This document shows, in pieces, positions 6,001 to 43,772 of a stretch of DNA of 64,000 nt (position 1 is the stretch's first letter; each line of letters opens with the position of its first letter). The DNA is taken from contig CM121341.1 of the NCBI GenBank assembly GCA_051530055.1, positions 6,178,784 to 6,242,783 on the forward strand, given 5' to 3'. Position numbers and translations under genes: made by a program. This DNA is from Neoechinorhynchus agilis. Its lineage: Eukaryota > Animalia > Acanthocephala. The notes below the pieces were generated by a model. It was given only the letters and a program-made list of their open reading frames with translations. It made no database searches and had not been told where the DNA came from.

Positions 6001-7828
6001 TGATGACGTCATCGCCATTTTTGATGACGTCATCGCCATTTTTGATGACGTCATCGCCATTTTTGATGACGTCATCGCCATTTTTGATGACGTCATCGCC
6101 ATTTTTGATGACGTCATCGCCATTTTTGATGACGTCATCGCCATTTTTGATGACGTCATCGCCATTTTTGATGACGTCATCGCCATTTTTGATGACGTCA
6201 TCTGACGTATCGTTTTTGAGACGTCATCGCCATTTTTGATGACGTCATCGCCATTTTTGATGACGTCATCGCCATTTTTGATGACGCCATCGCCATTTTT
6301 GATGACGTCATCGCCATTTTTGATGACGCCATCGCCATTTTTGATGACGTCATCGCCATTTTTGATGACGTCATCGTTATTTTGAATGACGTCATCGCCA
6401 TTTTTGATGACGTCATCGCCATTTTTGATGACGTCATCGCCATTTTTGATGACGTCATCGCCATTTTTATGACGTTATCGCCATTTTTGATGACATCATC
6501 GCGATTTTTTATGAGGTCATCGCGATTTTTGATGACGTCATCGCCATTTTTAATGACGTAGTCGCCATTTTTGATGACGTCATCGCCATTTTTGATGACG
6601 TCATCGCCATTTTTGATGACGTCATCGCCATTTTTGATGACGTCATCGCCATTTTTGATGACGTCATCGCGATTTTTGATGACGTCATCGCCATTTTTGA
6701 TGACGTCATCGCCATTTTTGATGACGTCATCGCCATTTTGATGACGTCATCGCCATTTTTGATGACGTCATCGCCATTTTTGACGTCATCGCCATTTTTG
6801 ATGACGTCATCGCCATTTTTGATGACGTCATCGCCATTTTTGATGACGTCATCGCCATTTTTGATGACGTCATCGCCATTTTTGATGACGTCATCGCCAT
6901 TTTTGATGACGTCATCGCCATTTTTGATGACGTCATCGCCATTTTTGATGACGTCATCGCCATTTTTGATGACGTCATCGCCATTTTTGATGACGTCATC
7001 GCGATTTTTGATGACGTCATCGCGATTTTTGATGACGTCATCGCCATTTTTGATGACGTCATCGCGATTTTTGATGACGTCATCGCGATTTTTGATGACG
7101 TCATCGCGATTTTTGATGACGTCATCGCGATTTTTGATGACGTCATCGCCATTTTGGATGACGTCATCGCGATTTTTGATGACGTCATCGCCATTTTTGA
7201 TGACGTCATCGCCATTTTTGATGACGTCATCGCCATTTTTTATGACGTCATCGCCATTTTTGATGACGTCATCGCGATTTTTTATGACGTCATCGCGATT
7301 TTTGATGACGTCATCGCCATTTTTGATGACGTCATCGCGATTTTTGATGACGTCATCGCGATTTTTGATGACGTCATCGCGATTTTTGATGACGTCATCG
7401 CGATTTTTGATGACGTCATCGCCATTTTGGATGACGTCATCGCGATTTTTGATGACGTCATCGCCATTTTTGATGGCGTCATCGCCATTTTTGATGACGC
7501 CATCGCCATTTTTGATGACGTCATCGCCATTTTTGATTACGTCATCGCGATTTTTGATGACGTCATCGCCATTTTTGATGACGTCATAACCATGACGTCA
7601 TCGCGATTTTTGATGACGTCATCGCCATTTTTGATGACGTCATCGCCATGACGTCATCGCGATTTTTGATGATGTCATCGCCATTTTTGATGACGTCATC
7701 GCCATGACGTAATCGCGATTTTTGATGACGTCATCGCCATTTTTGATGACGTCATCGCCATTTTTGATGACGTCATCGCAATTTTTGATGACGTCATCGC
7801 CATTTTTGATGACGTCATCGCGATTTTT
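1..7828. repeat. 21-bp palindromic tandem satellite, consensus GATGACGTCATCGCCATTTTT (GCC/GCG variants; 14-, 19- and 20-bp deletion units), about 370 copies
   Basis: Directly visible tandem unit from base 1 to the junction at about 7828. The heptapeptide-repeat ORFs in the track (MTSSPFL, DDVIAIF, MAMTSSK) follow from the 21-bp period. Confidence 0.99.
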
Positions 7829-10800
7829 TTCTTCAAAGAAATTCTTAAAATTGTTTTAGTGGGCATGATGTCGTCATGTCATCGACCGGGATATAAACAG
7901 TAGTTACCGCATGCGCGAAAATGTGTGGGTGGGTGTGTTCGGTTTTTTGTAGAATATAGAACCTATCTACTAGCGGCTCGGTCACAAAAATGAACTTGAC
8001 GACGCGCTAGAGAGAAGGAAGAATCCATATGCGAAACCTGTACATTGTAATGCTTTACCCGAACTGAACTTCTTTTAGCGAGTGATCGATTGCGTACTGA
8101 CGTTTTATATTTTCTTCAAAAAAATTCTTAAAATTGTTATAGTGGGCATGATGTCGTCATGCCATCGATCGGGATATAAACAGTAGTAATCGCATGCGTG
8201 TAAATGTGTAGGTGGGTGTGTTCGGTATTGCGTGGAATATAGAACATGTCCGCTAGCGGATCGGTCACAAAAATGAACTTGACGACGCGCTAGAGAGCAG
8301 GAAGAATCCATATGCGGAACCTGTACATTGTAATGCTTTACCCGAAATGAACTTCTTTCAGCGAGTGATCGATTTCGTACTGACGTTTTATATTTTCTTC
8401 AAGGAAATTCTTAAAATTGTTATAGTGGGCATGATGTCGTCATGCCTTCGATCGGGATATAAACAGTAGTAACCGCATGCGTGTAAATGTGTAGGTGGAT
8501 GTGTTCGGTTTTGTGTAGAATATAGAACATGTCTTCTAGCGGCTCGGTCACAAAAATGAACTTGACGACGTGCTAGAGAGCATGAAGAATCCATATGCGG
8601 AACCTGTACATTGTAATGCTTTACCCGAAATGAACTTCTTTCAGCGAGTGATCGATTGCGTAGTGACGTTTTATATTTTATTCAAAGAAATTCTTAAAAT
8701 TGTTATAGTGTGCATGATGTCGTCATGCCTTCGATCGGGATATAAACAGTAGTAGCCGCATGCGTGTGAATGTGTAGGTGGGTGTGTTCGGTTTTGTGTA
8801 GAATATAGAACGTGTCTACTAGCGGCTCGGTCACAAAAATGAACTGGACGACGCGCTAGAGAGCAGGAAGAATCCATGTGCGAAACCTGTACATTGTAAT
8901 GCTTTACCCGAAATGAACTTCTTTTAGCTAGTTATCGATTGCGTACTGACGTTTTATATTTTCTTCAAAGAAATTCTTAAAATTGTTATAGTGGGCATGA
9001 TGTCGTCATGCCATCGATCGGGATATAAACAGTAGTAACCGCATGCGTGTAAATGTGTAGGTGGGTGTGTTCGGTTTTGTGTAGAATATAGAACATGTCT
9101 ACTAGCGGCTCGGTCACAAAAAATAACTTGACGACGCGCTAGAGAGCAGGAAGAATCCATTTGCGAAACCTGTACATTGTAATGCTTTACCCGAAATGAA
9201 CTTCTTTTAGCGAGTGATCGATTGCGTACTGACGTTTTATATTTTCTTCAAAGAAATTCTTAAAATTGTTATAGTGGGCATGATGTCGTCATGCCATCGA
9301 TCGGGATATAAACAGTAGTAACCGCATGCGCGAAAATGTGTAGGTGGGTGTGTTCGGTTTTTTGTAGAATATAGAACATATCTACTAGCGGCTCGGTCAC
9401 AAAAATGAACTTGACGACGCGCTAGAGAGAAGGAAGAATCCATATGCGAAACCTGTACATTGTAATGCTTTACCCGAAATGAACTTCTTTCAGCGAGTGA
9501 TCGATTGCGTACTGACGTTTTATATAACATGTCTACTAGCGGCTCGGTCACAAAAATGGACTTGACGACGCGCTAGAGAGCATGAAGAATCCATATACGG
9601 AACCTGTACATTGTAATGCTTTACCCGAAATGAACTTCTTTCAGCGAGTGATCGATTGCGTAGTGACGTTTTATATTTTCTTCAAAGAAATTCTTAAAAT
9701 TGTTATAGTAAGCATGATGTCGTCATGCCTTCGATCGGGATATAAACATTAGTAACCGCATGCGTGTAAATGTGTAGGTGGGTGTGTTCGGTTTTGTGTA
9801 GAATATAGAACATGTCTACTAGCGGCTCGATCACAAAAATTAACTTGACGACGCGCTAGAGAGCAGGAAGAATCCATATGCGAAACCTGTACATTGTAAT
9901 GCTTTACCCGAAATGAACTTCTTTCAGCGAGTGATCGATTTCGTACTGACGTTTTATATTTTCTTCAAAGAAATTCTTAAAATTGTTATAGTGGGCATGA
10001 TGTCGTCATGCCATCGATCGGGATATAAACAGTAGTAACCGCATGCGTGTAAATGTGTAGGTGGGTGTGTTCGGTTTTGTGTAGAATATAGAACATGTCC
10101 GCAAGCGGATCGGTCACAAAAATGAACTTGACGACGCGCTAGAGAGCAGGAAGAATCCATATGCGGAACCTGTACATTGTAATGCTTTACCCGAAATGAA
10201 CTTCTTTCAACGAGTGATCGATTTCGTACTGACGTTTTATATTTTCTTCAAGGAAATTCTTGAAATTGTTATAGTGGGCATGATGTCGTCATGCCTTCGA
10301 TCGGGATATAAACAGTAGTAACCGCATGCGCGAAAATGTGTAGGTGGGTGTGTTCGGTTTTGTGTAGAATATAGAACATGTCTTCTAGCGGCTCGGTCAC
10401 AAAAATGAACTTGACGACGCTAGAAGAGCATGAAGAATCCATATGCGGAACCTGTACATTGTAATGCTTTACCCGAAATGAACTTCTTTCAGCGAGTGAT
10501 CGATTGCGTAGTGACGTTTTATATTTTCTTCAAAGAAATTCTTAAAATTGTTATAGTGGGCATGATGTCGTCATGCCATCGATCGGGATATAAACAGTAG
10601 TAACCGCATGCGCGAAAATGTGTAGGTGGGTGTGTTCGGTTTTTTGTAGAATATAGAACATGTCCGCTAGCGGATCGGTCACAAAAATGAACTTGACGAC
10701 GCGCTAGAGAGAAGGAAGAATCCATATGCGAAACCTGTACATTGTAATGCTTTAACCGAAATGAACTTCTTTTAGCGAGTGATCGATTGCGTACTGACGT

Positions 10801-13800
10801 TTTTTATTTTCTTCAAAGAAATTCTTAAAATTGTTATAGTGGGCATGATGTCGTCAAGTCGTCGACCGGGATATAAACAGTAGTAACCGCATGCGTGTAA
10901 ATGTGTAGGTGGGTGTGTTCGGTTTTGTTCAGAATATAGAACATGTCCACTGGCGACTCGATAACAAAAAGAACTTGACGACGCGCTAGAGAGCAGGAAG
11001 AATCCATATGCGAAACCTGTACATTGTAATCTTTTACAGAAATGAACTTCTTTCAGCGAGTGATCGATTGCGTACTGACGTTTTATATTTTCTTCAAAGA
11101 AATTCTCAAAAATTGTTATAGTGGGCATGATGTCTTCATGCAATCGATCGGGATATAAACAGTAGTAACCGCATGCGTGCAAATGTGTAGGTGGGTGTGT
11201 CCGGTTTTGTGTAGAATATAGAACATGTCCATTAGCGACTCGGTCACAAAAATGAACTTGACGACGCGCTAGAGAGCAGGAAGTATCCATATGCGAAACC
11301 TGTACATTGTAATGCTTTTCCCGAAATGAACTTCTTTTAGCGAGTTATCGATTGCGTACTTACGTTTTATATTTTCTTCAAAGAAATTTTTAAAATTGTT
11401 TTAGTGGGCATGATGTCGTCATGACATCGACCGGGATATAAACAGTAGTAACCGCATGCGTGTAAATGTGTAGGTGGGTGTGTTCGGTATTGTGTAGAAT
11501 ATAGAACATGTCCACTAGCGACTCAGTCACAAAAATGAACTTGACGACGCGATAGAGAGCAGGACAAATCCATATGCGAAACCTGTACATTGTAATGCTT
11601 TACCCGAAATGAACTTCTTTTAGCGAGTGATCGATTGCGTACTGACGTTTTATATTTTCTTCAAAGAAATTCTTAAAATTGTTATAGTGGGCATGATGTC
11701 GTCATGCCATCGATCGGGATATAAACAGTAGTAACCGCATGCGTGTAAATGTGTAGGTTTGTGTGTTCGGTTTTGTGTAGAATATAGAACGTGTCTACTA
11801 GCGGCTCGGTCACAAAAAATAACTTGACGACGCGCTAGAGAGCAGGAAGAATCCATATGGGAACCTGTACATTGTAATGCTTTAACCGAAATGAACTTCT
11901 TTTAGCGAGTGGTGGATTGCGTACTGACGTTTTATATTTTCTTCAAAGAAATTCTTAAAATTGTTATAGTTGGCATGATGTCGTCATGCCATCGATCAGG
12001 ATATAAACAGTAGTAACCGCATGCGCGAAAATGTGTAGGTGGGTGTGTTCGGTTTTTTTGTAGAATATAGAACATATTTACTAGCGGCTCGGTCACAAAA
12101 ATGAACTTGACGACGCGCTAGAGAGAAGGAAGAATCAATATGCGAAACCTGTACATTGTAATGCTTTACCCGAAATGAACTTCTTTTAGCGAGTGATCGA
12201 TTGCGTACTGACGTTTTATATTTTCTTCAAAGAAATTCTTAAAATTGTTTTAGTGGGCATGATGTCGTCATGCCATCGATCGGGATATAAACAGTAGTAA
12301 CCGCATGCGTGTAAATGTGTAGGTGGGTGTGTTCGGTTTTGTGTAGAATGTAGAACATGTCTACTAGCGGCTCGGTCACAAAAATGAACTTGACGACGCG
12401 CTAGAGAGCATGAAGAATCCATATGCGGAACCTGTACATTGTAATGCTTTACCCGAAATGAACTTCTTTCAGCGAGTGATCGATTGCGTAGTGACGTTTT
12501 ATATTTTCTTCAAAGAAATTCTTAAAATTGTTGTAGTGGGCATGATGTCGTCATGCCATCGATCGGGATATAAACAGTAGTAACCGCATGCGCGAAAATG
12601 TGTAGGTGGGTGTGTTCTGTTTTTTGTAGAATATAGAACATATCTACTAGCGGCTCGGTCACAAAAATGAACTTGACGACGCGCTAGAGAGAAGGAAGAA
12701 TCCATCTGCGAAACCTGTACATTGTAATGCTTTACCCGAAATGAACTTCTTTCAGCGAGTGATCGATTGCGTACTGACGTTTTATATTTTCTTCAAAGAA
12801 ATTCTTAAAATTGTTTTAGTTGGCATGATGTCGTCAAGTCGTCGACCGGGATATGAACAGTAGTAACCGCATGCGTGTAAATGTGTAGGTGGGTGTGTTC
12901 GGTTTTGTGTAGAATATAGAACATGTCCACTAGCGACTCGGTCACAAAAATGAACTTGACGAAGCGCTAGAGAGCAGGAAGAATCCATATGCGAAACCTG
13001 TACATTGTAATGCTTTACCAGAAATGAACTTCTTTCTGCGAGTGATCGATTGCGTACTTACGTTTTTTATTTTCTTCAAAGAAATTCTTAAAATTGTTAT
13101 AGTGGGCATGATGTCGTCATGCAATCGATCGGGATATAAACAGTAGTAACCGCATGCGTGTAAATGTGTAGGTGGGTGTGTACGGTTTTGTGTAGAATAT
13201 AGAACATGTCCATTAGCGACTCGGTCACAAAAATGAACTTGACGACGCGCTAGAGAGCAGGAAGTATCCATATGCGAAACCTGTACATTGTAATGCTTTT
13301 CCAGAAATGAACTTCTTTTAGCGAGTGATCGATTGCGTACTTACGTTTTATATTTTCTTCAAAGAAATTTTTAAAATTGTTTTAGTGGGCATGATGTCGT
13401 CATGTCATCGACCGGGATATAAACAGTAGTAACCGCATGCGTGTAAATGTGTAGGTGGGTGTGTTCGGTATTGTGTAGAATATAGAACATGTCCACTAGC
13501 GACTCGGTCACAAAAATGAACTTGACGACGCGATAGAGAGCAGGACAAATCCATATGCGAAACCTGTACATTGTAATGCTTTACCCGAAATGAACTTCTT
13601 TTAGCGGGTGATCGATTGCGTACTGACGTTTTATATTTTCTTCAAAGAAATTCTTAAAATTGTAATAGTGGGCATGATGTCGTCATGCCATCGACCGGGA
13701 TATAAACAGTAGTAACCGCATGCGTGTAAATGTGTAGGTGGGCGTGTTCGGTTTTGTGTAGAATATAGAACATGTCTACTAGCGGCTCGGTCCCAAAAAA

Positions 13801-16800
13801 TAACTTGACGACGCGCTAGAAGGAAACGGGAAGAATCCATATGTGAACCTGTACATTGTAATGCTTTTACCGAAATGAACTTCTTTTAGCGAGTGGTGGA
13901 TTGCGTACTGACGTTTTATATTTTCTTCAAAGAAATTCTTAAAATTGTTATAGTTGGCATGATGTCGTCATGCCATCGATCGCGATATAAACAGTAGCAA
14001 CCGCATGCGCGAAAATGTGTAGGTAGGTGTGTTCGGTTTTTTGTAGAATATAGAACATATCTACTAGCGGCTCGGTCACAAAAATGAACTTGACGACGCG
14101 CTAGAGAGAAGGAAGAATCCATATGCGAAACCTGTACATTGTAATGCTTTACCCGAAATGAACTTCTTTCGGCGAGTGATCGATTGCGTACTGATAGAAT
14201 ATATTTTCTTCAAAAATTCTATAATCCTTAAAATTGTTTTAGTCGGCATGATGTCGTCATGCCATCGATCGGGATATAAACAGTAGTAACCGCATGCGTG
14301 TAAATGTGTAGGTGGGTGTGTTCGGTTTTGTGTAGAATATAGAACATGTCTACTAGCGGCTCGGTCACAAAAATGAACTTGACGACGCGCTAGAGAGCAT
14401 GAAGAATCCATATGCGGAACCTGTACATTGTATTACTTTACCCGAAATGAACTTCTTTCAGCGAGTGATCGATTGCGTAGTGACGTTTTATATTTTCTTG
14501 AAAGAAATTCTTAAAATTGTTATAGTGGGCATGATGTCGTCATGCCATCGATCGGGATATAAACAGTAGTAACCGCATGCGTGTAAATGTGTAGGTGGGT
14601 GTGTTCGGTTTTTTGTAGAATATAGAACATATCTACTAGCGGCTCGGTCACAAAAATGAACTTGACGACGCGCTAGAGAGAAGGAAGAATCCATATGCGA
14701 AACCTGTACATTGTAATGCTTTACCCGAAATGAACTTCTTTCAGCGAGTGATCGATTGCGTACTGACGTTTTATATTTTCTTCAAAGAAATTCTTAAAAT
14801 TGTTTTAGTGGGCATGATGTCGTCATGCAATCGATCGGGATATAAACAGTAGTAACCGCATGCGTGTAAATGTGTAGGTGGGTTTGTTCGGTTTTGTGTA
14901 GAATATAGAACATGTCTACTAGCGGCTCGGTCACAAAAATGGACTTGACGACGCGCTAGAGAGCATGAAGAATCCATATGCGGAACCTGTACATTGTAAT
15001 GCTTTACCCGAAATGAACTTCTTTCAGCGAGTGATCGATTGCGTAGTGACGTTTTATATTTTATTCAAAGAAATTCTTAAAATTGTTATAGTGTGCATGA
15101 TGTCGTCATGCCTTCGATCGGGATATAAACAGTAGTAACCGCATGCGTGTCAATGTGTAGGTGGGTGTGTTCGGTTTTGTGTAGAATATAGAACATGTCT
15201 ACAAGCGGCTCGGTCACAAAAATGAACTTGACGACGCGCTAGAGAGCAGGAAGAATCCATATGCGGAACCTGTACATTGTAATGCTTTACCAGAAATGTA
15301 TATCTTTCAGCGAGTGATCGATTTCGTACTGACGTTTTATATTTTCTTCAAAGAAATTCTTAAAATTGTTATAGTGGGCATGATGTCGTCATGCCATCGA
15401 TCGGGATATAAACAGTAGTAACCGCATGCGTGTAAATGTATAGGTGGGTGTGTTCGGTTTTGTTTAGAATATAGAACATATCTACTAGCAGCTCAGTCAC
15501 AAAAATGAACTTGACGATGCGCTAGAGATCAGGAAGAATCCATATGCGGAACCTGTACATTGTAATGCTTTACCCGAAATGAACTTCTTTCAACGAGTGA
15601 TCGATTTCGTACTGACGTTTTATATTTTCTTCAAGGAAATTCTTGAAATTGTTATAGTGGGCATGATGTCGTCATGCCTTCGATCGGGATATAAACAGTA
15701 GTAACCGCATACGTGTAAATGTGTAGGTGGGTGTGTTCGGTTTTGTGTAGAATATAGAACATGTCTACTAGCGGCTCGGTCACAAAAATGAACTTGACGA
15801 CGCGCTAGAGAGCAGGAAGAATCCATATGCGGAACCTGTACATTGTAATGCTTTACCCGAAATGAACTTCTTTCAGCGAGTGATCGATTGCGTAGTGACG
15901 TTTTATATTTTCTTCAAAGAAATTCTTAAAATTGTTATAGTGGGCATGATGTCGTCATACCGTCAGTCAGGATATAAACAGTAGTAACCGCATGCGAGAA
16001 AATGTGTAGGTAGGTGTGTTCGGTTTTTTGTAGAATATAGAACATATCTACTAGCGGCTCAGTCACAAAAATGAACTTGACGACGCGCTAGAGAGAAGGA
16101 AGAATCCATATGCGAAACCTGTACATTGTAATGCTTTACCCGAAATGAACTTCTTTCAGCGAGTGATCGATTGCGTACTGACGTTTTATATTTTCTTCAA
16201 ATTCTTAAAATTGTTTTAGTGGGCATGATGTCGTCAAGTCGTGGACCGGGATATAAACAGTAGTAACCGCATGCGTGTAAATGTGTAGGTGGGTGTGTTC
16301 AGTTTTGTGTAGAATATAGAACATGTCCACTAGCGACTCGGTCACAAAAATGAACTTGACGACGCGCTAGAGAGCAGGAAGAATCCATATGCGAAACCTG
16401 TACATTGTAATGCTTTACCAGAAATGAACTACTTTCTGCGAGTGATCGATTGCGTACTTACGTTTTTTATTTTCTTCAAAGAAATTCTTAAAATTGTTAT
16501 AGTGGGCATGATGTCGTCATGCAATCGATCGGGATATAAACAGTAGTAACCGCATGCGTGTAAATGTGTAGGTGGGTGTGTCCGGTTTTGTGTAGAATAT
16601 AGAACATGTCCATTAGCGACTCGGTCACAAAAATGAACTTGACGACGCGCTAGAGAGCAGGAAGTATCCATATGCGAAACCTGTACATTGTAATGCTTTT
16701 CCCGAAATGAACTTCTTTTAGCGAGTTATCGATTGCGTACTTACGTTTTATATTCTCTTCAAAGAAATTTTTAAAATTGTTTTAGTGGGCATGATGTCGT

Positions 16801-19800
16801 CATGTCATCGACCGGGATATAAACAGTAGTAACCGCATGCGTGTAAATGTGTAGGTGGGTGTGTTCGGTATTGTGTAGAATATAGAACATGTCCACTAGC
16901 GACTCAGTCACAAAAATGAACTTGACGACGCGATAGAGCAGGACAAATCCATATGCCGAAACCTGTACATTGTAATGCTTTACCGAAATGAACTTCTTTT
17001 GTGAGTGATCGATTGCGTACTGACGTTTTATATTTTCTTCAAAGAAATTCTTAAAATTGTAATAGTGGGCATGATGTCGTCATGCCATCGACCGGGATAA
17101 AAACAGTAGTAACCGCATGCGTGTAAATGTGTAGGTGGGTGTGTTCGGTATTGTGTAGAATATAGAACATGTCCACTAGCGACTCGGTCACAAAAATGAA
17201 CTTGACGGCGCGATAGAGAGCAGGACAAATCCATATGCGAAACCTGTACATTGTAATGCTTTACCCGAAATGAACTTCTTTTAGCGAGTGATCGATTGCG
17301 TACTGACGTTTTATATTTTCTTCAAAGAAATTCTTAAAATTGTCATAGTGGGCATGATGTCGTCACGCCATCGACCGGGATATAAACAGTAGTAACCGCA
17401 TGCGTGTAAATGTGTAGGTGGGTGTGTTCGGTTTTGTGTAGAATATAGAACATGTCTACTAGCGGCTCGGTCACAAAAATGAACTTGACGACGCGCTAGA
17501 GAGCATTAAGAATCCATATGCGGAACCTGTACATTGTAATGCGTTACCCGAAATGAACTTCTTTCAGCGAGTGATCGATTGCGTAGTGACGTTTTATATT
17601 TTATTCAAAGAAATTCTTAAAATTGTTATAGTGTGCATGATGTCGTCATGCCTTCGATCGGGATATAAACAGTAGTAACCGCATGCGTGTAAATGTGTAG
17701 GTGGGTGTGTTCGGTTTTTTGTAGAATATAGAACATATCTACAAGCGGCTCGGTCACAAAAATGAACTTGACGACGCGCTAGAGAGAAGGAAGAATCCAT
17801 ATGCGAAACCTGTACATTGTAATGCTTTACCCGAAATGAACTTCTTTTAGCGACTGATCGATTGCGTACTTACGTTCTATATTTTCTTCAAAGAAATTCT
17901 TAAAATTGTTATAGTGTGCATGATGTCGTTATGCCTTCGATCGGGATATAAACAGTAGTAACCGCATGCGTGTAAATGTGTAGGTGGGTGTGTTCGGTTT
18001 TGTGTAGAATATAGAACATGTCCACTAGCGACTCGGTCACAAAAATGAACTTGACGACGCGATAGAGAGCAGGACAAATCCATATGCGAAACCTGTACAT
18101 TGATGCTTTTTACGAAATGAACTTCTTTCAGCGAGTGATCGATTGCGTACTGACGTTTTTATTTTCTTCAAAGAAATTCTTAAAATTGTTATAGTGGGCA
18201 TGATGTCGTCATGCAATCGATCAGGATATAAACAGAAGTAACCGCATGCGTGTAAATGTGTAGGTGGGTGTGTTCGGTTTTGTGTAGAATATAGAACATG
18301 TCTACTAGCGGCTCGGTCACAAAAATGGACTTGACGATGCGCTAGAGAGCATGAAGAATCCATATGCGGAACCTGTACATTGTAATGCTATACCCGAAAT
18401 GAACTTCTTTCAGCGAGTGATCGATTGCGTAGTGACGTTTTATATTTTATTCAAAGAAATTCTTAAAATTGTTATAGTGTGCATGATGTCGTCATGCCTT
18501 CGATCAGGATATAAACAGTAGTAGCCGCATGCGTGTGAATGTGTAGGTGGGTGTGTTCGGTTTTGTGTAGAATATAGAACGTGTCTACTAGCGGCTCGGT
18601 CACAAAAATGAACTTGACGACGCGCTAGAGAGCAGGAAGAATCCATATGCGGAACCTGTACATTGTAATGCTTTACCCGAAATGAACTTCTTTCAGCGAG
18701 TGATCGATTTCGTACTGACGTTTTATATTTTCTTCAAAGAAATTCTTAAAATTGTTATAGGTAACATGATGTCGTCATGCCATCGATCGGGATATAAACA
18801 GTAGTAACCGCATGCGTGTAAATGTGTAGGTGGGTGTGTTCGGTTTTGTTTAGAATATAGAACATGTCTACTAGCGGCTCGGTCACAAAAATGAACTTGA
18901 CGATGCGCTAGAGAGCAGGAAGAATCCATATGCGGAACCTGTACATTGTAATGCTTTACCCGAAATGAACTTCTTTCAACGAGTGATCGATTTCGTACTG
19001 ACGTTTTATATTTTCTTCAAGGAAATTCTTAAAATTGTTATAGTGGGCATGATGTCGTCATGCCTTCGATCGGGATATAAACAGTAGTAACCGCATGCGT
19101 GTAAATGTGTAGGTGGGTGTGTTCGGTTTTGTGTAGAATATAGAACATGTCTACTAGCGGCTCGGTCACAAAAATGAACTTGACGACGCGCTAGAGAGCA
19201 TGAAGAATCCATATGCGGAACCTGTACATTGTAATGCTTTACCCGAAATGAACTTCTTTCAGCGAGTGATCGATTTCGTACTGACGTTTTATATTTTCTT
19301 CAAAGAAATTCTTAAAATTGTTATAGTGGGCATTATGTCGTCATGCCATCGATCGGGATATAAACAGTAGTAACCGCATGCGCGAAAATGTGTAGGTGGG
19401 TGTGTTCGGTTTTGTGTAGAGTATAGAACATGTCTACTAGCGGCTCGATCACAAAAATTAACTTGACGACGCGCTAGAGAGAAGGAAGAATCCATATGCG
19501 AAACCTGTACATTGTAATGCTTTACCCGAAATGAACTTCTTTCAGCGAGTGATCGATTGCGTACTGACGTTTTATATTTTCTTCAAAGAAATTCTTAAAA
19601 TTGTTTTAGTGGGCATGATGTCGTCAAGTCGTCGACCGGGATATAAACAGTAGTAACCGCATGCGTGTAAATGTGTAGGTGGGCGTGTTCGGTTTTGTGT
19701 AGAATATAGAACATGTCTACTAGCGGCTCGGTCCCAAAAAATAACTTGACGACGCGCTAGAGAGCAGGAAGAATCCATATGTGAACCTGTACATTGTAAT

Positions 19801-22800
19801 GCTTTAACCGAAATGAACTTCTTTTAGCGAGTGGTGGATTGCGGACATTTTATATTTTCTTCAAAGAAATTCTTAAAATTGTTATAGTTGGCATGATGTC
19901 GTCATGCCATCGATCAGGATATAAACAGTAGTAACCGCATGCGCGAAAATGTGTGTAGGTGGGTGTGTTCGGTTTTTTTGTAGAATATGGGCTGTATTTA
20001 CTAGCGGCTCGGTCACAAAAATGAACTTGACGACGCGCTAGAGAGAAGGAAGAATCCATATGCGAAACCTGTACATTGTAATGCTTTACCCGAAATGAAC
20101 TTCTTTCAGCGAGTAATCGATTGCGTACTGACGTTTTATATTTTCTTCAAAGAAATTCTTAAAATTGTTTTAGTGGGCATGATGTCGTCATGTCATCGAC
20201 CGGGATATAAACAGTAGTTACCGCATGCGCGAAAATGTGTAGGTGGGTGTGTTCGGTTTTTTGTAGAATATAGAACATATCTACTAGCGGCTCGGTCACA
20301 AAAATGAACTTGACGACGCGCTAGAGAGAAGGAAGAATCAATATGCGAAACCTGTACATTGTAATGCTTTACCCGAAATGAACTTCTTTTAGCGAGTGAT
20401 CGATTGCGTACTGACGTTTTATATTTTCTTCAAAAAAATTCTTAAAATTGTTATAGTGGGCATGATGTCGTCATGCCATCGATCGGGATATAAACAGTAG
20501 TAATCGCAAGCGTGTAAATGTGTAGGTGGGTGTGTTCGGTATTGCGTGGAATATAGAACATGTCCGCTAGCGGATCGGTCACAAAAATGAACTTGACGAC
20601 GCGCTAGAGAGCAGGAAGAATCCATATGCGGAACCTGTACATTGTAATGCTTTACCAGAAATGAACTTCTTTCTGCGAGTGATCGATTGCGTACTGACGT
20701 TTTTTATTTTCTTCAAAGAAATTCTTAAAATTGTTATAGTGGGCATGATATCGTCATGCAATCGATCGGGATATAAACAGTAGTAACCGCATGCGTGTAA
20801 ATGTGTAGGTGGGTGTGTCCGGTTTTGTGTAGAATATAGAACATGTCCATTAGCGACTCGGTCACAAAAATGAACTTGACGACGCGCTAGAGAGCGGGAA
20901 GTATCCATATGCGAAACCTGTACATTGTAATGCTTTTCCCGAAATGAACTTCTTTTAGCGAGTGATCGATTGCGTACTTACGTTTTATATTTTCTTCAAA
21001 GAAATTTTTAAAATTGTTTTTTAGTGAAAGCAGTGTCGTCATGTCATCGACCGGGATATAAACAGTAGTAACCGCATGCGTGTAAATGTGTGAGTGGGTG
21101 TGTTCATTATTGTGTAGGGTATAAGTGCTGTCCACTAGCGACTCAGTCACAAAAATGAAAACTTGACGACGCGATGAGAGCAGGAAGAATCCATATGCGA
21201 AACCTGTACATTGTAATGCTTTACCCGAAATGAACTTCTTTTAGCAAGTGATCGATTGCGTACTGACGTTTTATATTTTCTTCAAAGAAATTCTTAAAAT
21301 TGTCATAGTGGGCATGATGTCGTCATGCCATCGATCGGGATATAAACAGTAGTAACCGCATGCGTGTAAATGTGTAGGTGGGTGTGTTCGGTATTGTGTA
21401 GAATATAGAACATGTCCACTAGCGACTCGATCACAAAAATGAACTTGACGGCGCGATAGAGAGCAGGACAAATCCATATGCGAAACCTGTACATTGTAAT
21501 GCTTTACCCGAAATGAACTTTTTTTAGCGAGTGATCGATTGCGTACTGACGTTTTATATTTTCTTCAAAGAAATTCTTAAAATTGTCATAGTGGGCATGA
21601 TGTCGTCATGCCATCGATCGGGATATAAACAGTAGTAACCGCATGCGTGTAAATGTGTAGGTGGGTATGTTCGGTTTTGTGTAGAATATAGAACATGTCT
21701 ACTAGCGACTCGGTCACAAAAATGAACTTGACGACGCGCTAGAGAGCAGGAAGAATCCATATGCGAAACCTGTACATTGTAATGCTTTACCCGAAATGAA
21801 CTTCTTTCAGCGAGTGATCGATTGCGTAGTGACGTTTTATATTTTATTCAAAGGAAATTCTTAAAATTGTTATAGTGTGCATGATGTCGTCATGCCTTCG
21901 ATCGGGATATAAACAGTAGTAACCGCATGCGTGTAAATGTGTAGGTGGGTGTGTTCGGTTTTTTGTAGAATATAGAACATATCTACTAGCGGCTCGGTCA
22001 CAAAAATGGACTTGACGACGCGCTAGAGAGAAGGAAGAATCCATATGCGAAACCTGTACATTGTAATGCTTTACCCGAAATGAACTTCTTTTAGCGACTG
22101 ATCGATTGCGTACTTACGTTCTATATTTTCTTCAAAGAAATTCTTAAAATTGTTATAGTGTGCATGATGTCGTCATGCCTTCGATCGGGATATAAACAGT
22201 AGTAACCGCATGCGTGTAAATGTGTAGGTGGGTGTGTTCGGTTTTGTGTAGAATATAGAACATGTCTACTAGCGATTCGGTCACAAAAATGAACTTGACG
22301 ACGCGCTAGAGAGCAGGAAGAATCGATATGCGAAACCTGTACATTGTAATGCTTTACCCGAAATGAACTTCTTTTAGCGAGTGATCGATTGCGTACTGAC
22401 GTTTTTTATTTTCTTCAAAGAAATTCTTAAAATTGTTATAGTGGGCATGATGTCGTCATGCAATCGATCGGGATATAAACAGAAGTAACCGCATGCGTGT
22501 AAATGTGTAGGTGGGTTTGTTCGGTTTTGTGTAGAATATAGAACATGTCTACTAGCGGCTCGGTCACAAAAATGGACTTGACGACGCGCTAGAGAGCATG
22601 AAGAATCCATATGCGGAACCTGTACATTGTAATGCTTTACCCGAAATGAACTTCTTTCAGCGGGTGATCGATTGCGTAGTGACGTTTTATATTTTCTTCA
22701 AAGAAATTCTTAAAATTGTTATAGTGGGCATGATGTCGTCATGCCATCGATCGGGATATAAACAGTAGTAACCGCATGCGTGTAAATGTGTAGGTGGGTG

Positions 22801-25800
22801 TGTTCGGTTTTGTGTAGAATATAGAACATGTCTACTAGCGGCTCGGTCACAAAAATGAACTTGACGACGCGCTAGAGAGCAGGAAGAATCCGTGTGCGAA
22901 ACCTGTACATTGTAATGCGAAGTATCCATATGCGAAACCTGTACATTGTAATGCTTTTCCCGAAATGAACTTCTTTTAGCGAGTGATCGATTGCGTACTT
23001 ACGTTTTATATTTTCTTCAAAGAAATTTTTAAAATTTTTTTAGTGGGCATGATGTCGTCATGTCATCGACCGGGATATAAACAGTAGTAACCGCATGCGT
23101 GTAAATGTGTAGGTGGGTGTGTTCGGTATTGTGTAGAATATAGAACATGTCCACTAGCGACTCGGTCACAAAAATGAACTTGACGACGCGATAGAGAGCA
23201 GGACAAATCCATATGCGAAACCTGTACATTGTAATGCTTTACCCGAAATGAACTTCTTTTAGCAAGTGATCGATTGCGTACTGACGTTTTATATTTTCTT
23301 CAAAGAAATTCTTAAAATTGTCATAGTGGGCATGATGTCGTCATGCCATCGATCGGGATATAAACAGTAGTAACCGCATGCGTGTAAATGTGTAGGTGGG
23401 TGTGTTCGGTTTTGTTTAGAATATAGAACATGTCTACTAGCGGCTCGGTCACAAAAATGAACTTGACGATGCGCTAGAGAGCAGGAAGAATCCATATGCG
23501 AAACCTGTACATTGTAATGCTTTACCCGAAATGAACTTCTTTTAGCGAGTTATCGATTGCGTACTGACGTTTTATATTTTCTTCAAAAAATTCTTAAAAT
23601 TGTTATAGTGGGCATGATGTCGTCATGCCATCGATCGGGATATAAACAGTAGTAACCGCATGCGTGTAAATGAGTAGGTGGGTGTGTTCGGTTTTGCGTA
23701 GAATATAGAACGTGTCCATTAGCGACTCGGTCACAAAAATGAACTTGATGACGCGCTAGAGAGCAGGAAGTATCCATATGCGGAACCTGTACATTGTAAT
23801 GCTTTACCCGAAATGAACTTCTTTCAGCGAGTGATCGATTTCGTACTGACGTTTTATATTTTCTTCAAGGAAATTCTTAAAATTGTTATAGTGGGCATGA
23901 TGTCGTCATGCCTTCGATCGGGATATAAACAGTAGTAACCGCATGCGTGTAAATGTGTAGGTGGGTGTGTTCGGTTTTGTGTAGAATATAGAACATGTCT
24001 TCTAGCGGCTCGGTCACAAAAATGAACTTGACGACGTGCTAGAGAGCATGAAGAATCCATATGCGGAACCTGTACATTGTAATGCTTTACCCGAAATGAA
24101 CTTCTTTCAGCGAGTGATCGATTGCGTAGTGACGTTTTATATTTTATTCAAAGAAATTCTTAAAATTGTTATAGTGTGCATGATGTCGTCATGCCTTCGA
24201 TCTTGATATAAACAGTAGTAACCGCATGCGTGTTAATGTGTAGGTGGGTGTGTTCGGTTTTGTGTAGAATATAGAACATGTCTACTAGCGGCTCGGTCAC
24301 AAAAATGAACTTGACGACGCGCTAGCGAGCAGGAAGAATCCGTGTGCGAAACCTGTACATTGTAATGCTTTACCCGAAATGAACTTCTTTTAGTTAGTTA
24401 TCGATTGCGTACTGACGTTTTATATTTTCTTCAAAGAAATTCTTAAAATTGTAATAGTGGGCATGATGTCGTCATGCCATCGATCGGGATATAAACAGTA
24501 GTAACCGCATGCGGGTAAATGTGTAGGTGGGTGTGTTCGGTTTTGTGTAGAATATAGAACATGTCTACTAGCGGCTCGGTCACAAAAAATAACTTGACGA
24601 CGCGCTAGAGAGCAGGAAGAATCCATATGCGAAACCTGTACATTGTAATGCTTTACCCGAAATGAACTTCTTTTAGCGAGTGATCGATTGCGTACTGACG
24701 TTTTATATTTTCTTCAAAGAAATTCTTAAAATTGTTATAGTTGGCATGATGTCGTCATGCCATCGATCGGGATATAAACAGTAGTAACCGCATGCGCGAA
24801 AATGTGTTGGTGGGTGTGTTCGGTTTTTTGTAGAATATAGAACATATCTACTAGCGGCTCGGTCACATAAATGAACTTGACGACGCGCTAGAGAGAAGGA
24901 AGAATCCATATGCGAAACCTGTACATTGTAATGCTTTACCCGAAATGAACTTCTTTCAGCGAGTGATCGATTGCGTACTGACGTTTTATATTTTCTTCAA
25001 AGAAATTCTTAAAATTGTTATAGTGGGCATGATGTCGTCATGCCATCGATCGGGATATAAACAGTAGTAACCGCATGCGCGAAAATGTGTAGGTGGGTGT
25101 GTTCGGTTTTTTGTAGAATATAGAGCATATCTACTAGCGGCTCGGTCACAAAAATGAACTTGACGACGCGCTAGAGAGAAGGATGAATCCATATGCGAAA
25201 CCTGTACATTGTAATGCTTTACCCGAAATGAACTTCTTTCAGCGAGTGATCGATTGCGTACTGACGTTTTATATTTTCTTCAAAGAAATTCTTAAAATTG
25301 TTTTAGTGGGCATGATGTCGTCAAGTCATCGACCGGGATATAAACAGTAGTAACCGCATGCGTGTAAATGTGTAGGTGGGTGTGTTCGGTTTTGTATAGA
25401 ATATAGAACATGTCCACTAGCGACTCGGTCACAAAAATGAAGTTGACGACGCGCTAGAGAGCAGGAAGAATCCATATGCGAAACCTGTACATTGTAATGC
25501 TTTACCAGAGATGAACTTCTTTCTGCGAGTGATCGATTGCGTACTGACGTTTTTTATTTTCTTCAAAGAAATTCTTAAAATTGTTATAGTGGGCATGATG
25601 TCGTCATGCAATCGATCGGGATATAAACAGTAGTAACCGCATGCGCGTAAATGTGTAGGTGGGTGTGTTCGGTTTTTTGTAGAATATAGAACATATCTAC
25701 TAGCGGCTCGGTCACAAAAATGAACTTGACGTAGGTGGGTGTCGGTAGAATATAAAATTCTACTAGCGGCTCGGTCACAAAAAAACTTGACGACGCGCTA

Positions 25801-28800
25801 GAGAGCAGGAAGAATCCATATGCGAAACCTGTACATTGTAATGCTTTACCCGAAATGAACTTCTTTTAGCGAGTGATCGATTGCGTACTGACGTTTTATA
25901 TTTTCTTCAAAGAAATTCTTAAAATTGTTATAGTGGCATGATGTCGTCATGCCATCGATCGGGATATAAACAGTAGTAACCGCATGCGCGAAAATGTGTG
26001 GTGGGTGTGTTCGGTTTTTTGTAGAATATAGAACATATCTACTAGCGGCTCGGTCACAAAAATGAACTTGACGACGCGCTAGAGAGAGGAAGAATCCATA
26101 TGCGAAACCTGTACATTGTAATGCTTTACCCGAAATGAACTTCTTTAGCGAGTATCGATTGCGTACTGACGTTTTATATTTTCTTCAAAAATTCTTAAAA
26201 TTGTTAGTGGGCATGATCGTCATCATCGACGGGATATAAACAGTAGTAACCGCATGCGGAAAGGTAGGTTTTTTTAGTATAGACATTCACTAGCGCCTCA
26301 CAAAAATAACTTGAGACGCCTAGAGAGAGGAGAATCCATAGCAACCTGTACATTGTAACACCCACCAAAAAATTCTTAAAATTGTTAGTGGCATGATTTG
26401 CATCCATTAAACAGACCATAATGGGTGGGTGTTCGGTTGTTAGAATAAGAACATGTCACTAGCGACTCGTCACAAAAATGAATTGAGACGCGCTAGAGAG
26501 CAGGAAGAATCCATATGCGAAACCTGTACATTGTAATGCTTTACCAGAGATGAACTTCTTTCTGCGAGTGATCGATTGCGTACTGACGTTTTTTATTTTC
26601 TTCAAAGAAATTCTTAAAATTGTTATAGTGGGCATGATGTCGTCATGCAATCGATCGGGATATAAACAGTAGTAACCGCATGCGCGAAAATGTGTAGGTG
26701 GGTGTGTTCGGTTTTTTGTAGAATATAGAACATATCTACTAGCGGCTCGGTCACAAAAATGAACTTGACGACGCGCTAGAGAGCAGGAAGAATCCATATG
26801 CGAAACCTGTACATTGTAATGCTTTACCACAAAACACCCACAAAAAAACCACCCAAAAAAACCACAAAACCACAAACCACGAAATGAACTTCTTTTAGCG
26901 AGTTATCGATTGCGTACTGACGTTTTATATTTTCTTCAAAGAAATTCTTAAAATTGTTATAGTGGGCATGATGTCGTCATGCCATCGACCGGGATATAAA
27001 CAGTAGTTACCGCATGCGTGTAAATGTGTAGGTGGGTGTGTTCGGTTTTGTGTAGAATATAGAACATGTCCACTAGCGACTCGGTCACAAAAATGAACTT
27101 GACGACGCGCTAGAGAGCAGGAAGAATCCATATGCGAAACCTGTACATTGTAATGCTTTACCCGAAATGATCTTCTTTCTGCGAGTGATCGATTGCGTCC
27201 TGACGTTTTTTATTTTCTTCAAAGAAATTTTTAAAATTGTTTTAGTTGGCATGATGTCGTCATGTCATCGACCGGGATATAAACAGTAGTAACCGCATGC
27301 GTGTAAATGTGTAGGTGGGTGTGTTCGGTATTGTGTAGAATTTAGAACATGTCCACTGGCGACTCGGTCACAAAAATGAACTTGACGACGCGATAGAGAG
27401 CAGGACAAATCCATATGCGAAACCTGTACATTGTAACGCTTTACCCGAAATGAACTTCTTTTAGCGAGTGATCGATTGCGTACTGACGTTTTATATTTTC
27501 TTCAAAGAAATTCTTAAAATTGTTATAGTGGGCATGATGTCGTCATGCCATCGATCGGGATATAAACAGTAGTAACCGCATGCGTGTAAATGTGTAGGTG
27601 GGGGTGTTCGGTTTTGCGTAAAATATAGAACATGCCCACTAGCGACTCGGTCACAAAAATGAACTTGACGACGCGCTAGAGAGCATGAATAATCCATATG
27701 CGGAACCTGTACATTGTAATGCTTTACCCGAAATGAACTTCTTTCAGCGAGTGATCGATTTCGTACTGACGTTTTATATTTTCTTCAAAGAAATTCTTAA
27801 AATTGTTATAGTGGGCATGATGTCGTCATGCCATCGATCGGGATATAAACAGTAGTAACCGCATGCGTGTAAATGTGTAGGTGGGTGTGTTCGGTTTTGT
27901 GTAGAATATAGAACATGTCCACTAGCGACTCGGTCACAAAAATGAACCTGACGACGCGCTAGAGGGCAGGAAGAATCCATATGCGAAACCTGTACATTGT
28001 AATGCTTTACCCGAAATGAACTTCTTTCAGCGAGTGATCGATTGCGTAGTGACGTTTTTATTTTCTTCAAAGAAATTCTTAAAATTGTTATAGTGGGCAT
28101 GATGTCGTCATGCAATCGATTGGGATATAAACAGTAGTAACCGCATGCGTGTAAATGTGTAGGTGGGTGTGTCCGGTTTTGTGTAGAATATAGAACATGT
28201 CCACTAGCGACTCGGTCACAAAAATGAACTTGACGACGCGCTAGAGAGCAGGAAGTATCCATATGCGAAACCTGTACATTGTAATGCTTTTCCCGAAATG
28301 AACTTCTTTTAGCGAGTGATCGATTGCGTACTTACGTTTTATATTTTCTTCAAAGAAATTTTTAAAATTGTTTTAGTGGGCATGATGTCGTCATGTCATC
28401 GACCGGGATATAAACAGTAGTAACCGCATGCGTGTAAATGTGTAGGTGGGTGTGTTCGGTATTGTGTAGAATATAGAACATGTCCACCAGCGACTCGGTC
28501 ACAAAAATTAACTTGACGACGCGATAGAGAGCAGGACAAATCCATATGCGAAACCTGTACATTGTAATGCTTTACCCGAAATGAACTTCTTTTAGCGAGT
28601 GATCGATTGCGTACTGACGTTTTATATTTTCTTCAAAGAAATTCTTAAAATTGTCATAGTGGGCATGATGTCCTCATGCCATCGACCGGGATATAAACAG
28701 TAGTAACCGCATGCGTGTAAATGTGTAGGTGGGTGTGTTCGGTTTTTTGTAGAATATAGAACATGTCCACTAGCGACTCGGTCACAAAAAGTAACTTTAC

Positions 28801-29160
28801 AACTCGCTAGAGAGCAGGAAGAATCAATATGCGGAACCTGTACATTGTAATGCTTTACCCGAAATGAACTTCTTTCAGCGAGTGATCGATTTCGTACTGA
28901 CGTTTTATATTTCCTTCAAAGAAATTCTTAAAATTGTTATAGTGGGCATGATGTCGTCATGCCATCGATCGGGATATAAACAGTAGAAACCGCATGCGTG
29001 TAAATGTGTAGGTGGGTGTGTTCGGTTTTGTGTAGAATATAAAACATGTCTACTAGCGACTCGGTCACAAAAATGAATTTTACGACGCGCTAGAGAGCAG
29101 GAAGAATCCATATGCGGAACCGGTTCATTGTAATGCTACACTCAAAATGAACTTTTTTCA
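7826..29160. repeat. 283-bp tandem satellite, about 75 copies, with variant classes forming irregular higher-order structure
   Basis: Recurring 68-aa minus-strand ORFs spaced 283 bp apart (e.g. 8105, 8388, 8671, 8954); unit read directly from the sequence. Confidence 0.99.
8135..8269. mobile_element. Solo-LTR-like 135-bp insert inside each 283-bp unit (representative copy)
   Basis: Begins TGTTATAG, ends CGGTCACA, flanked by AAAAT (8130-8134) and AAAAT (8270-8274); contains GATATAAAC; absent from the edge monomers at 29.2-30.0 kb, which show the empty site. Confidence 0.55.
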
Positions 29161-30056
29161 GCCAGTAATCGATTACATGCTGACGTTTTATGTTTTCTTT
29201 GAAAATTCTTTAAAGTGAACTTGACGACGCGGTAGAGAGCAGGTAGAATCTCTATGCGCAATCTGTTCATTGTAATTCTACACTCTAAATGAACTTTTCT
29301 AGCGAGTGATCGATGACATACTGACCTTTTATATTTTCTTCAAAGAAATTTCTACAGTGAAGTTGACGACGCGGTAGAGAGCAGGAAGAATCCGTATGCA
29401 CAAGGTGTTAATTGTAATTCAACACTCGAAACGATCTTTTTAGCGAGGGATCGATAACAATCTGGAGTTTTATAGTTTCTTCCAAGAATTTCTTTAAGTA
29501 AACTTGGCGACGCGGTAGAGAGCTGGAAGATTCTTTATAAGATATCTGTTCATTGTAGTTGCACATTCGAAATCAGCTTTTTTAGCGAGTGATCGATTCC
29601 ACACGAACGTTTTTTATTTTGTTCAAGAAATTCTTTAAATGAACTTGACGACGCGGTAGGGATCAGAAAGAATCCCAATGCGAAGCCCGTCCATTGTAGT
29701 TCTACACTCGAAATGAACTTTTTTTTAGGGTTTGATCGATTACATGCCACTTCAGCGGCGGCACGTAATCAAGACGTACTTTTTATTTTTATATCTACAT
29801 TGGTCAAATGCTTGTTGTCCTTCCTTCATTCGGCGAAAGGAAACTTCTTCCGGCTTCCCGTCATTCACGTGAAAGAAGTCGCCGCCATGCCACGTTTTAT
29901 ATTTTCAGGAAGAATCTATATGAAAAATCTGTTCGTTTTAGTTCTTCACTCGAAATGAACTTATTTTAGCGAGTGATCGATTGCATACTGACCTTTTATG
30001 TTTTCTTCGAAAAAAATCCTACAGTGAACTTGACGACGCGGTAGAGAGCTGGAAGA
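29161..30056. repeat. Diverged 141-142-bp monomers, ancestral form of the 283-bp satellite
   Basis: TGAACTTGACGACGC-type anchors at 29216, 29358, 29499, 29640 (periods 142, 141, 141) and 30025. Homologous to the non-insert half of the 283-mer. Confidence 0.93.
29751..29885. mobile_element. 135-bp insertion with 8-bp direct repeat (CATGCCAC) in an edge monomer; possible small non-autonomous DNA transposon
   Basis: CATGCCAC at 29743-29750 and 29886-29893; imperfect GCGGCG inverted termini; the monomer sequence resumes after it. Confidence 0.4.
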
Positions 30057-43067: not shown

Positions 43068-43772
43068 ATGAAAAATCGAAACACTAAGCCGCAATTTTCA
43101 ATGGCTTCGACGACCGAACTCTATAAAAGCCGAGCATCCTTAAGCCCTTCCCTTGAATGTCGCTAGTTTTGGGGCGTGTAAAACCTTCAAATATGAATGA
43201 AAAATCGAAACACTAAGCCGCAATTTTCAATGGCTTCGACGACCGAACTCTATAAAAGCCGAGCATCCTTAAGCCCTTCCCTTGAATGTCGCTAGTTTTG
43301 GGACGTGTAAAACCTTCAAATATGAATGAAAAATCGAAACAGTAAGCCGCAATTTTCAATGGCTTCGACGACCGAACTCTATAAAAGCCGAGCATCCTTA
43401 AGCCCTTCCCTTGAATGTCGCTAGTTTTGGGGCGTGTAAAGCCTTCAAATATGAATGAAAAATCGAAACACTAAGCCGCAATTTTCAATGGCTTCGACGA
43501 CCGAACTCTATAAAAGCCGAGCATCCTTAAGCCCTTCCCTTGAATGTCGCTAGTTTTGGGACGTGTAAAACCTTCAAATATGAATGAAAAATCGAAACAG
43601 TAAGCCGCAATTTTCAATGGCTTCGACGACCGAACTCTATAAAAGCCGAGCATCCTTAAGCCCTTCCCTTGAATGTCGCTAGTTTTGGGGCGTGTAAAGC
43701 CTTCAAATATGAATGAAAAATCGAAACACTAAGCCGCAATTTTCAATGGCTTCGACGACCGAACTCTATAAA
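43068..43772. repeat. 129-bp tandem array, about 5.5 copies, with a 258-bp dimeric pattern
   Basis: Unit starts at 43068, 43197, 43326, 43455, 43584, 43713; units 2-3 are repeated as units 4-5 (CACT/CAGT, GGGA/GGGG, AAAA/AAAG markers). Confidence 0.97.

Follow-up and report, generated by a model that had tools for sequence, protein, structure and literature searches.

How does a satellite come to carry, in unit after unit, a segment that the monomers at its own margin lack? This question is raised by a 64,000-nucleotide stretch of the acanthocephalan Neoechinorhynchus agilis (assembly GCA_051530055.1, contig CM121341.1; C1:6178784-6242783), referred to here as the window, which contains an array of 283-bp units. 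Each unit joins a ~143-bp monomer to a 135-bp segment bordered on both sides by AAAAT. Genome-wide searches of the 46-Mb assembly were used to trace both parts. In all likelihood, the 283-bp satellite consists of an older ~143-bp satellite monomer and the 135-bp long terminal repeat (LTR) of a Ty3/gypsy-type retrotransposon that was inserted into one such monomer, the composite then being amplified.

Three arrays adjoin one another in the window, as delimited by Tandem Repeats Finder (TRF), which also supplied the tandem periods and match percentages: a 21-bp satellite (1-7828), the 283-bp satellite (7827 to ~29200) and an array with a 141-bp period (29071-29745) and only 76% matches. By anchoring on the junction of monomer and insert, 73 units of the 283-bp array were located, and 50 intervals measured exactly 283 bp. 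These 50 units are 94.7-98.9% identical (mean 96.6%) to their own consensus, which was built of the non-coding satellite unit only, for the purpose of measuring divergence. The original prediction had dissected the unit into AAAAT, a 135-bp TG...CA segment and a second AAAAT (example 8130-8274), and the coordinates of the three parts agree with it (Table 1). The termini of the segment form an imperfect inverted repeat (TGT.A/T.ACA). AAAAT is the same on both sides of the insert in 61 of 71 units, and the others are single-base variants. The insert also matches a second, minus-strand array about 52 kb upstream of the first, where the two copies of AAAAT are the same in 135 of 202 units and the rest again differ by single bases. 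Across the ~280 units of the two arrays, the LTR part and the monomer part show equal within-array identity (~94-95%). The unit is therefore a composite satellite, in which a part derived from a transposable element (TE) and a non-TE satellite part have been homogenised together.

The segment had been read as an LTR before any copy was known outside the array, and a genome-wide search had been proposed. When this was run, at least 12 copies were found at 11 loci outside the satellite, on C1, C2 and C3, so that the insert is not confined to it. Four of them (C1:261821, 2678138, 11765732 and 16460767) were found with a pattern requiring a non-T base before TGTTATAG, and others are listed in Table 1. 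BLAST matches between the satellite unit and the dispersed loci start and stop exactly at the insert boundaries, TGTTATAG and GGTCACA, and all copies, in the satellite and dispersed, have the termini TGTTA...TCACA and the same boundaries.

These results bear on a simpler possibility, that the 283-bp unit is a diverged dimer (a higher-order repeat), with the insert a strongly diverged sister monomer and the edge monomers the undimerised form. The lengths are suggestive, as the insert plus one AAAAT makes 140 bp, near the monomer length, and 283 is close to 2 x 141. However, local alignment of the insert to the doubled monomer, judged against shuffles, detected no similarity (z = -0.28 forward, 1.8 reverse), and the same segment stands outside the satellite beside retroelement genes, with exact common boundaries. 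The missing similarity and the dispersed copies, including the pair described next, refute the dimer, which we regard as hardly credible.

At C1:16.46 Mb (locus L060, minus strand), two copies in the same orientation lie 1.8 kb apart. The 5′ copy has a 46-bp internal deletion and is followed by TT-TGGCGACGAGGGTGC, which resembles a tRNA-type primer-binding site. The interior continues with a gag-like open reading frame (ORF), then an ORF with Integrase_H2C2 and rve domains, and the purine tract GGAAGAAAAAAGGCGAAA directly precedes the 3′ copy. This locus is an internally deleted element. A more complete coding region is found at C1:11.77 Mb (L059), where RVT_1 and RT_RNaseH/RT_RNaseH_2 (3369-4232) and Integrase_H2C2 (4220-4801) follow in order, and then a purine tract and an LTR. 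The succession of reverse transcriptase (RT), RNase H and integrase is the Ty3/gypsy domain arrangement. This copy is truncated, its 5′ LTR and gag not being present. Another LTR copy, at C1:0.26 Mb (L061), has the same integrase end and purine tract in front of it, and a genome search with the integrase-plus-LTR stretch of L060 brought up additional LTRs and partial elements, located on C1, C2 and C3. The 135-bp segment is an LTR, and the Ty3/gypsy-type family to which it belongs is low in copy number, mostly degraded and equipped with very short LTRs. The LTR reading is thus upheld; the accompanying reference to a terminal-repeat retrotransposon in miniature (TRIM) needs correction, the parent being a coding family.

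A pattern combining a T-loop with the complement of the primer-binding site matched four genomic sites at one mismatch (control, 0), which would be consistent with a small tRNA gene family; the sites are C1:662097, C1:11642338, C2:962893 and C2:5633746. Neither the window nor the retrieved loci contained a tRNA gene. The dispersed Ty3/gypsy copies lie within coding sequence that resembles non-LTR retrotransposons (L060:4796-4830 and L059:5866-5960; for example, ...TKGVHQGAVLSQLLFNIFLND after the L059 LTR), and CTCAC occurs both before the 5′ LTR of L060 and after the 3′ LTR of L059.

Since the 283-bp array directly abuts the 21-bp satellite (boundary 7826/7827), the segment might have been copied from that satellite or other local DNA without transposition, or the array might be an assembly artefact. 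A 17-nt stretch of the LTR, TGATGTCGTCATGCCAT, does resemble the 21-bp unit (z = 4.1; 2 of 300 shuffles reach this value), and the stretch from 25731 to 26880 has an error-ridden appearance. Yet the likeness is limited to 17 of the 135 nt, and dispersed LTRs that lie far from any 21-bp array have it too, for which reason an origin from the 21-bp satellite was rejected, and the two separate arrays, with ~280 concordant units at a regular 283-bp spacing, make an artefact unlikely. Local copying and misassembly are together very improbable. The 17-nt resemblance falls on the hairpin-forming part of the LTR.

If a retrotransposon was inserted in a pre-existing satellite, monomers without the insert might still be found. 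From 29075 to 30056 the period falls to 141 bp, and the monomers lack both the 135-bp segment and one pentamer, as had been claimed for the edge of the array; the clearest site reads TTCTT TAAAT GAACTT. Core-type and edge-type states are combined in the first of the monomers between 29075 and 29745. At the five LTR-less junctions of the window, the differences are point substitutions (TAAAGT, CTACAGT, TTTAAGT, TAAAT) and not deletion breakpoints, and the exact empty site predicted, TTCTTAAAATGAACTTG, is present in an edge monomer of the second array (C1:6136752-6136727, minus strand). The variable breakpoints that would have pointed to secondary loss were thus not seen.

Independent evidence on the duplication comes from a 407-bp copy at C1:2678139-2678545 (L048:4139-4545), 3.5 Mb from the arrays. 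It consists of an LTR, AAAAT-monomer-AAAAT and a second LTR, with a perfect AGTCC on both sides (...GCG AGTCC / LTR / AAAAT-monomer-AAAAT / LTR / AGTCC CATTT...). The corresponding empty site was sought with a query in which a single AGTCC stands between 10 nt of the left and 13 nt of the right flank. The joined flanks were found at 21 genomic places with no more than 3 mismatches in 28 (two with only 1), while the reversed control gave none, and the calculated chance expectation is ~1e-4. Having 21 uninterrupted paralogues, the insertion lies in another dispersed repeat. An ORF that ends 1.2 kb upstream, with RVT_1 and a weak match to GIY-YIG, makes it probable that this repeat is a Penelope-like element. 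The LTR ends of the Ty3/gypsy-type family therefore duplicate 5 bp on integration, which supports AAAAT in the satellite as a target-site duplication and gives the original claim of a 5-bp duplication a basis outside the array.

The order of events can be read from the divergence of the two parts. The core monomer is 79-87% identical to the edge monomers (13-21% divergence), and the nearest dispersed relatives of the satellite LTR are 94% identical to its consensus. If the two parts changed at comparable rates, the monomer family is thus 2-3 times older than the arrival of the LTR, in agreement with the predicted order (monomer first, LTR later) and contradicting the view of the LTR-less monomers as secondary losses. 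The dispersed LTRs have in common the states GGGTGATAAAC (or TGATACAC), AACTGCA and GCGCGTATATG, whereas all satellite LTRs carry GGGATATAAAC, AACCGCA and GCGTGTAAATG. Searched for by pattern, the dispersed states turned up in 12 LTRs, distributed over 11 loci, and in no LTR of the arrays. Both arrays are fixed for the satellite states, except that 13 of 73 units in the window and 5 of 203 in the second array keep an ancestral C.

The copy at 2.678 Mb invites the reverse history, in which the 283-bp unit is a non-autonomous LTR-internal-LTR element that grew into an array by unequal exchange between LTRs, the LTR-less monomers having later lost the LTR between the two AAAATs. Such a structure, with its own 5-bp duplication, does exist there; its LTRs retain family-ancestral states, and a motif resembling a primer-binding site lies in the monomer 10 nt after the LTR. 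The motif, TGACGACGCGCTAGA, is the best match in that monomer to the site of the element (9/15) and is not significant (P = 0.17); P falls to 0.02 if its position is required, a condition set post hoc. No purine tract precedes the 3′ LTR of the copy. The greater age of the monomers (13-21% divergence, against 6% for the LTR) runs counter to this history, as does the position of the LTR-less monomers at the outer edges of both arrays, like old margins. The monomer at 2.678 Mb has core-type derived states and not those of the edge, and for an internal region to end in the same AAAAT on both sides by coincidence would be a 1-in-1000 event. Growth from a miniature element is accordingly improbable. 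Classification of the element as a TRIM was likewise rejected, the parent family being coding and the miniature copy having neither a significant primer site nor a purine tract.

Insertion of an LTR into an older monomer leaves the 2.678 Mb copy itself to be explained. Its monomer is 98% identical to the core consensus, its LTRs are mostly in family-ancestral states, and its variant CCTGAACATT is shared with one array unit only, the 5′-most of the second array. These features fit a copy that branched off the composite unit early and integrated at a time when most of the satellite-specific LTR changes had yet to be fixed; the main alternative, which also fits, is that the interior of a resident element was replaced by gene conversion from the array. 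The integration implies that LTR ends from adjacent array units can serve jointly as the ends of a miniature element. It is conceivable, although somewhat short of probable, that two adjacent array LTRs and the monomer between them acted as a TRIM-like mobile unit and integrated in trans at this site. Such a unit would have been transcribed from its LTR, reverse-transcribed and integrated by proteins of the Ty3/gypsy family, inside or beside the Penelope-like element and with a 5-bp duplication. As neither a significant primer site nor a purine tract is present, simple trans-retrotransposition is not assured. The LTR-monomer-LTR copy is possibly the novel element of this case. If the suggestion is true, a satellite has turned back into a retroelement, by a possible route for the origin of TRIMs, and the ~280 tandem LTRs are, or once were, active promoters.

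Within the satellite LTR, GATATAAAC is a putative promoter motif. It includes a TATAAA where the dispersed LTRs read TGATAAAC or TGATACAC, and an AATATA motif is found near the LTR 3′ end. TATAAA is one of about five satellite-specific fixed changes, so alone it is no evidence for selection, and any transcription of the satellite is at present an inference. A scan for sigma-70 promoters and terminators was discarded as irrelevant to a eukaryotic host.

The second array was mapped separately with the insert and with the monomer over C1:6060001-6178783. The consensuses of the two arrays differ at one position, and unit identity between arrays is 93.9%, compared with 94-95% within them. The composite unit has been homogenised over ~280 copies, and old monomers are kept at the margins of both arrays. 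In unit orientation these old monomers lie on the 5′ side of one array and the 3′ side of the other, the placement expected if an inversion broke inside a single edge-core-edge array. At the inner ends of the two arrays, the phases do not join up exactly. Across the genome, a 15-mer of the monomer core has 74 forward and 195 reverse matches; these counts fit the two arrays, and the satellite is therefore essentially confined to this C1 locus. Two exact matches to the 15-mer lie outside the arrays (C1:1275276-1275290 and C1:2300586-2300600; ~0.09 expected by chance) and are possibly further dispersed monomer fragments.

Table 1. Positions of the composite satellite, its parts, related LTR copies and flanking features. 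Plain numbers are window positions.
Feature	Position	Strand	Remark
283-bp composite satellite array, ~73-75 units	7827-29074	+	~143-bp monomer, 135-bp solo LTR and duplicated AAAAT per unit
First LTR copy in array	7852-7986	+	
Left target-site-duplication copy AAAAT, example unit	8130-8134	+	
Solo LTR of Ty3/gypsy-type family, example unit	8135-8269	+	TGTTATAG...CGGTCACA, 135 bp
TATAAA inside LTR, example unit	8175-8180	+	Satellite-specific derived state
Right target-site-duplication copy AAAAT, example unit	8270-8274	+	
Older monomer part, example unit	8275-8412	+	GAACTTGACGACG...AAATTCTT
151-bp partial duplication inside array	9370-9676	+	Junction TTTTATAT/AACATG within LTR; rearrangement, not empty site
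Rearranged, degenerate units	25731-26880	+	Dense single-base deletions, one truncated unit
Last LTR copy in array	28935-29069	+	
LTR-less ~141-bp monomers, ~4.8 copies	29075-29745	+	79-87% identical to core monomer
Empty site in edge monomer	29631-29646	+	TTCTT TAAAT GAACTT
Unrelated sequence breaking up last edge monomers, ~160 bp	29746-29905		
Last monomer and partial monomer, 141-bp family	29906-30056	+	Satellite ends here
21-bp satellite TTTTGATGACGTCATCGCCAT	1-7826		8.5 kb total, from C1:6178087 (L047:8087)
Degenerate (AAG)n tract, ~5 kb	C1:6070009-6075116 (L037:9-5116)		Flanks far end of second array
Second 283-bp array, ~205 units	C1:6075121-6134206	-	
2.4-kb block between second array and its 141-bp edge	C1:6134212-6136560 (L043:4212-6560)	-	
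LTR-less 141-bp monomers, 6.7 copies	C1:6136570-6137515	-	Edge of second array
Further dispersed LTR copies	C3:5850777-5850911; C3:11379-11516 and 15582-15719 (pair); C1:9810710; C1:12359719-851; C2:15475029		

Several points weigh against the history favoured here, that of an LTR inserted into an older monomer. The flanks of the L060 element are unlike (CTCAC and CTATT), without a matching duplication, and among the loci found there was no intact full-length element in which two complete LTRs are combined with a matching duplication. The assignment of the primer tRNA to tRNA-Ser is tentative. The degenerate stretch within the window array, which includes a 50-bp CA-rich patch (26830-26880), may be a decayed patch or a local assembly error. 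Finally, a microhomology-mediated deletion would also leave a 5-bp A-rich direct repeat, so the direction of change rests on the divergence values and on the independent 5-bp duplication at 2.678 Mb.

The following sequence of events would account for the locus. A satellite of ~141-143 bp pre-existed, and a Ty3/gypsy-type element with 135-bp LTRs would have integrated into one of its monomers, duplicating the target AAAAT. We infer that the full element was then reduced to a solo LTR by recombination between its LTRs. Through unequal exchange or gene conversion, presumably, the composite 283-bp unit would have multiplied, become homogenised and replaced the core of the array, but not its two outer edges, where diverged LTR-less monomers remain. 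The ~5 substitutions of the satellite LTR would have become fixed in the course of homogenisation, one pair of them making the canonical TATAAA. A single ancestral edge-core-edge array may have been split by an inversion of ~100 kb, giving the two present arrays. An LTR, one core-type monomer and a second LTR would also have integrated 3.5 Mb away with a 5-bp duplication.

Several other features were noted around the arrays. The 2.4-kb block between the second array and its edge monomers contains two ORFs (395 and 327 amino acids), in which zinc-knuckle-like and endonuclease-like motifs were recognised by eye. The block had no Pfam match; its resemblance to the 5′ part of a non-LTR retrotransposon was judged by eye. 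Between the edge monomers of the second array and the 21-bp satellite lie about 41 kb of other sequence. Each 21-bp unit contains a palindrome, ATGACGTCAT, with a core, TGACGTCA, that is cAMP-response-element (CRE)-like, and just upstream of this satellite lies a tandem repeat of 119 bp (or 236 bp) in ~6 copies with 82% matches (L047:7360-8080). Three further tandem arrays in the window are unrelated to the composite satellite (43068-43772, 47446-48279 and 48280-50873; 129 bp x 5.5, 133 bp x 6.5 and 250 bp x 10, with 91-98% matches).

LTR-derived satellites, arrays that share LTRs, retroelements multiplied with their flanks and composite TE-satellite units are already known, and the present case is unusually legible among them. 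The maize CRM1TR and CRM4TR tandem repeats come from centromeric Ty3/gypsy retrotransposons (Sharma, Wolfgruber and Presting 2013, PMC3648361). As in these, the N. agilis array contains a Ty3/gypsy LTR, growth and homogenisation are attributed to recombination or gene conversion, and two nearby loci are involved. CRM1TR and CRM4TR derive wholly from the element (LTR plus untranslated region), whereas here the LTR makes up half of the unit and the rest is a pre-existing monomer; the empty site and target duplication are also still readable, and the host is an animal. Other routes from TE to satellite have been described (McGurk and Barbash 2018, PMC5932611) and reviewed ('Satellite DNAs rising from the transposon graveyards', PMC12628747). 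The N. agilis satellite resembles those cases in that LTRs are substrates for unequal exchange, neighbours share one LTR and composite monomers include TE parts. The composite monomers in the review are mosaics of degraded TE pieces, in contrast to a single clean integration with an intact duplication.

Human centromeric HERV-K (K111) copies have spread together with flanking pericentromeric repeat (PMC3759726, PMC4425911). In K111 a retroelement sitting in (peri)centromeric repeat increased in number along with its flanks through recombination, and not through new integrations, so that one target duplication is common to all copies; the N. agilis satellite is comparable in this respect. Whereas K111 consists of proviruses of kilobase size or of solo LTRs, spread over chromosomes in numbers from a few dozen to hundreds, the present 135-bp solo LTR forms a regular half of a 283-bp unit at one locus. 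TRIMs, including tandem TRIM arrays, have LTRs of 100-250 bp and can form alternating LTR-internal arrays, and the copy at C1:2.678 Mb, with its 5-bp duplication, has TRIM dimensions. It differs from TRIMs in that the LTR family has coding relatives and the interior is a satellite monomer.

Bovine satellites carry amplified inserted segments. Composite repeat arrays are also found in the complete human genome (Hoyt et al., bioRxiv 10.1101/2021.07.12.451456). In both, as here, satellite DNA and a TE-derived segment were amplified as one unit, but the units are far larger, and how they arose can usually be reconstructed less cleanly.

Most accounts of interconversion between TEs and satellites rest on degraded remains. 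At this locus each step of one route can be read: the old monomer, the empty site, the 5-bp duplication, the solo LTR, the coding relatives of the LTR and the takeover of the core with old margins left in place. With the LTR as a time stamp, the locus offers a compact model for dating and measuring array turnover, and it permits the testing of LTR-promoter-driven satellite transcription. A further testable idea comes from the ectopic LTR-monomer-LTR copy, namely that new miniature retroelements can arise from a satellite bearing solo LTRs.

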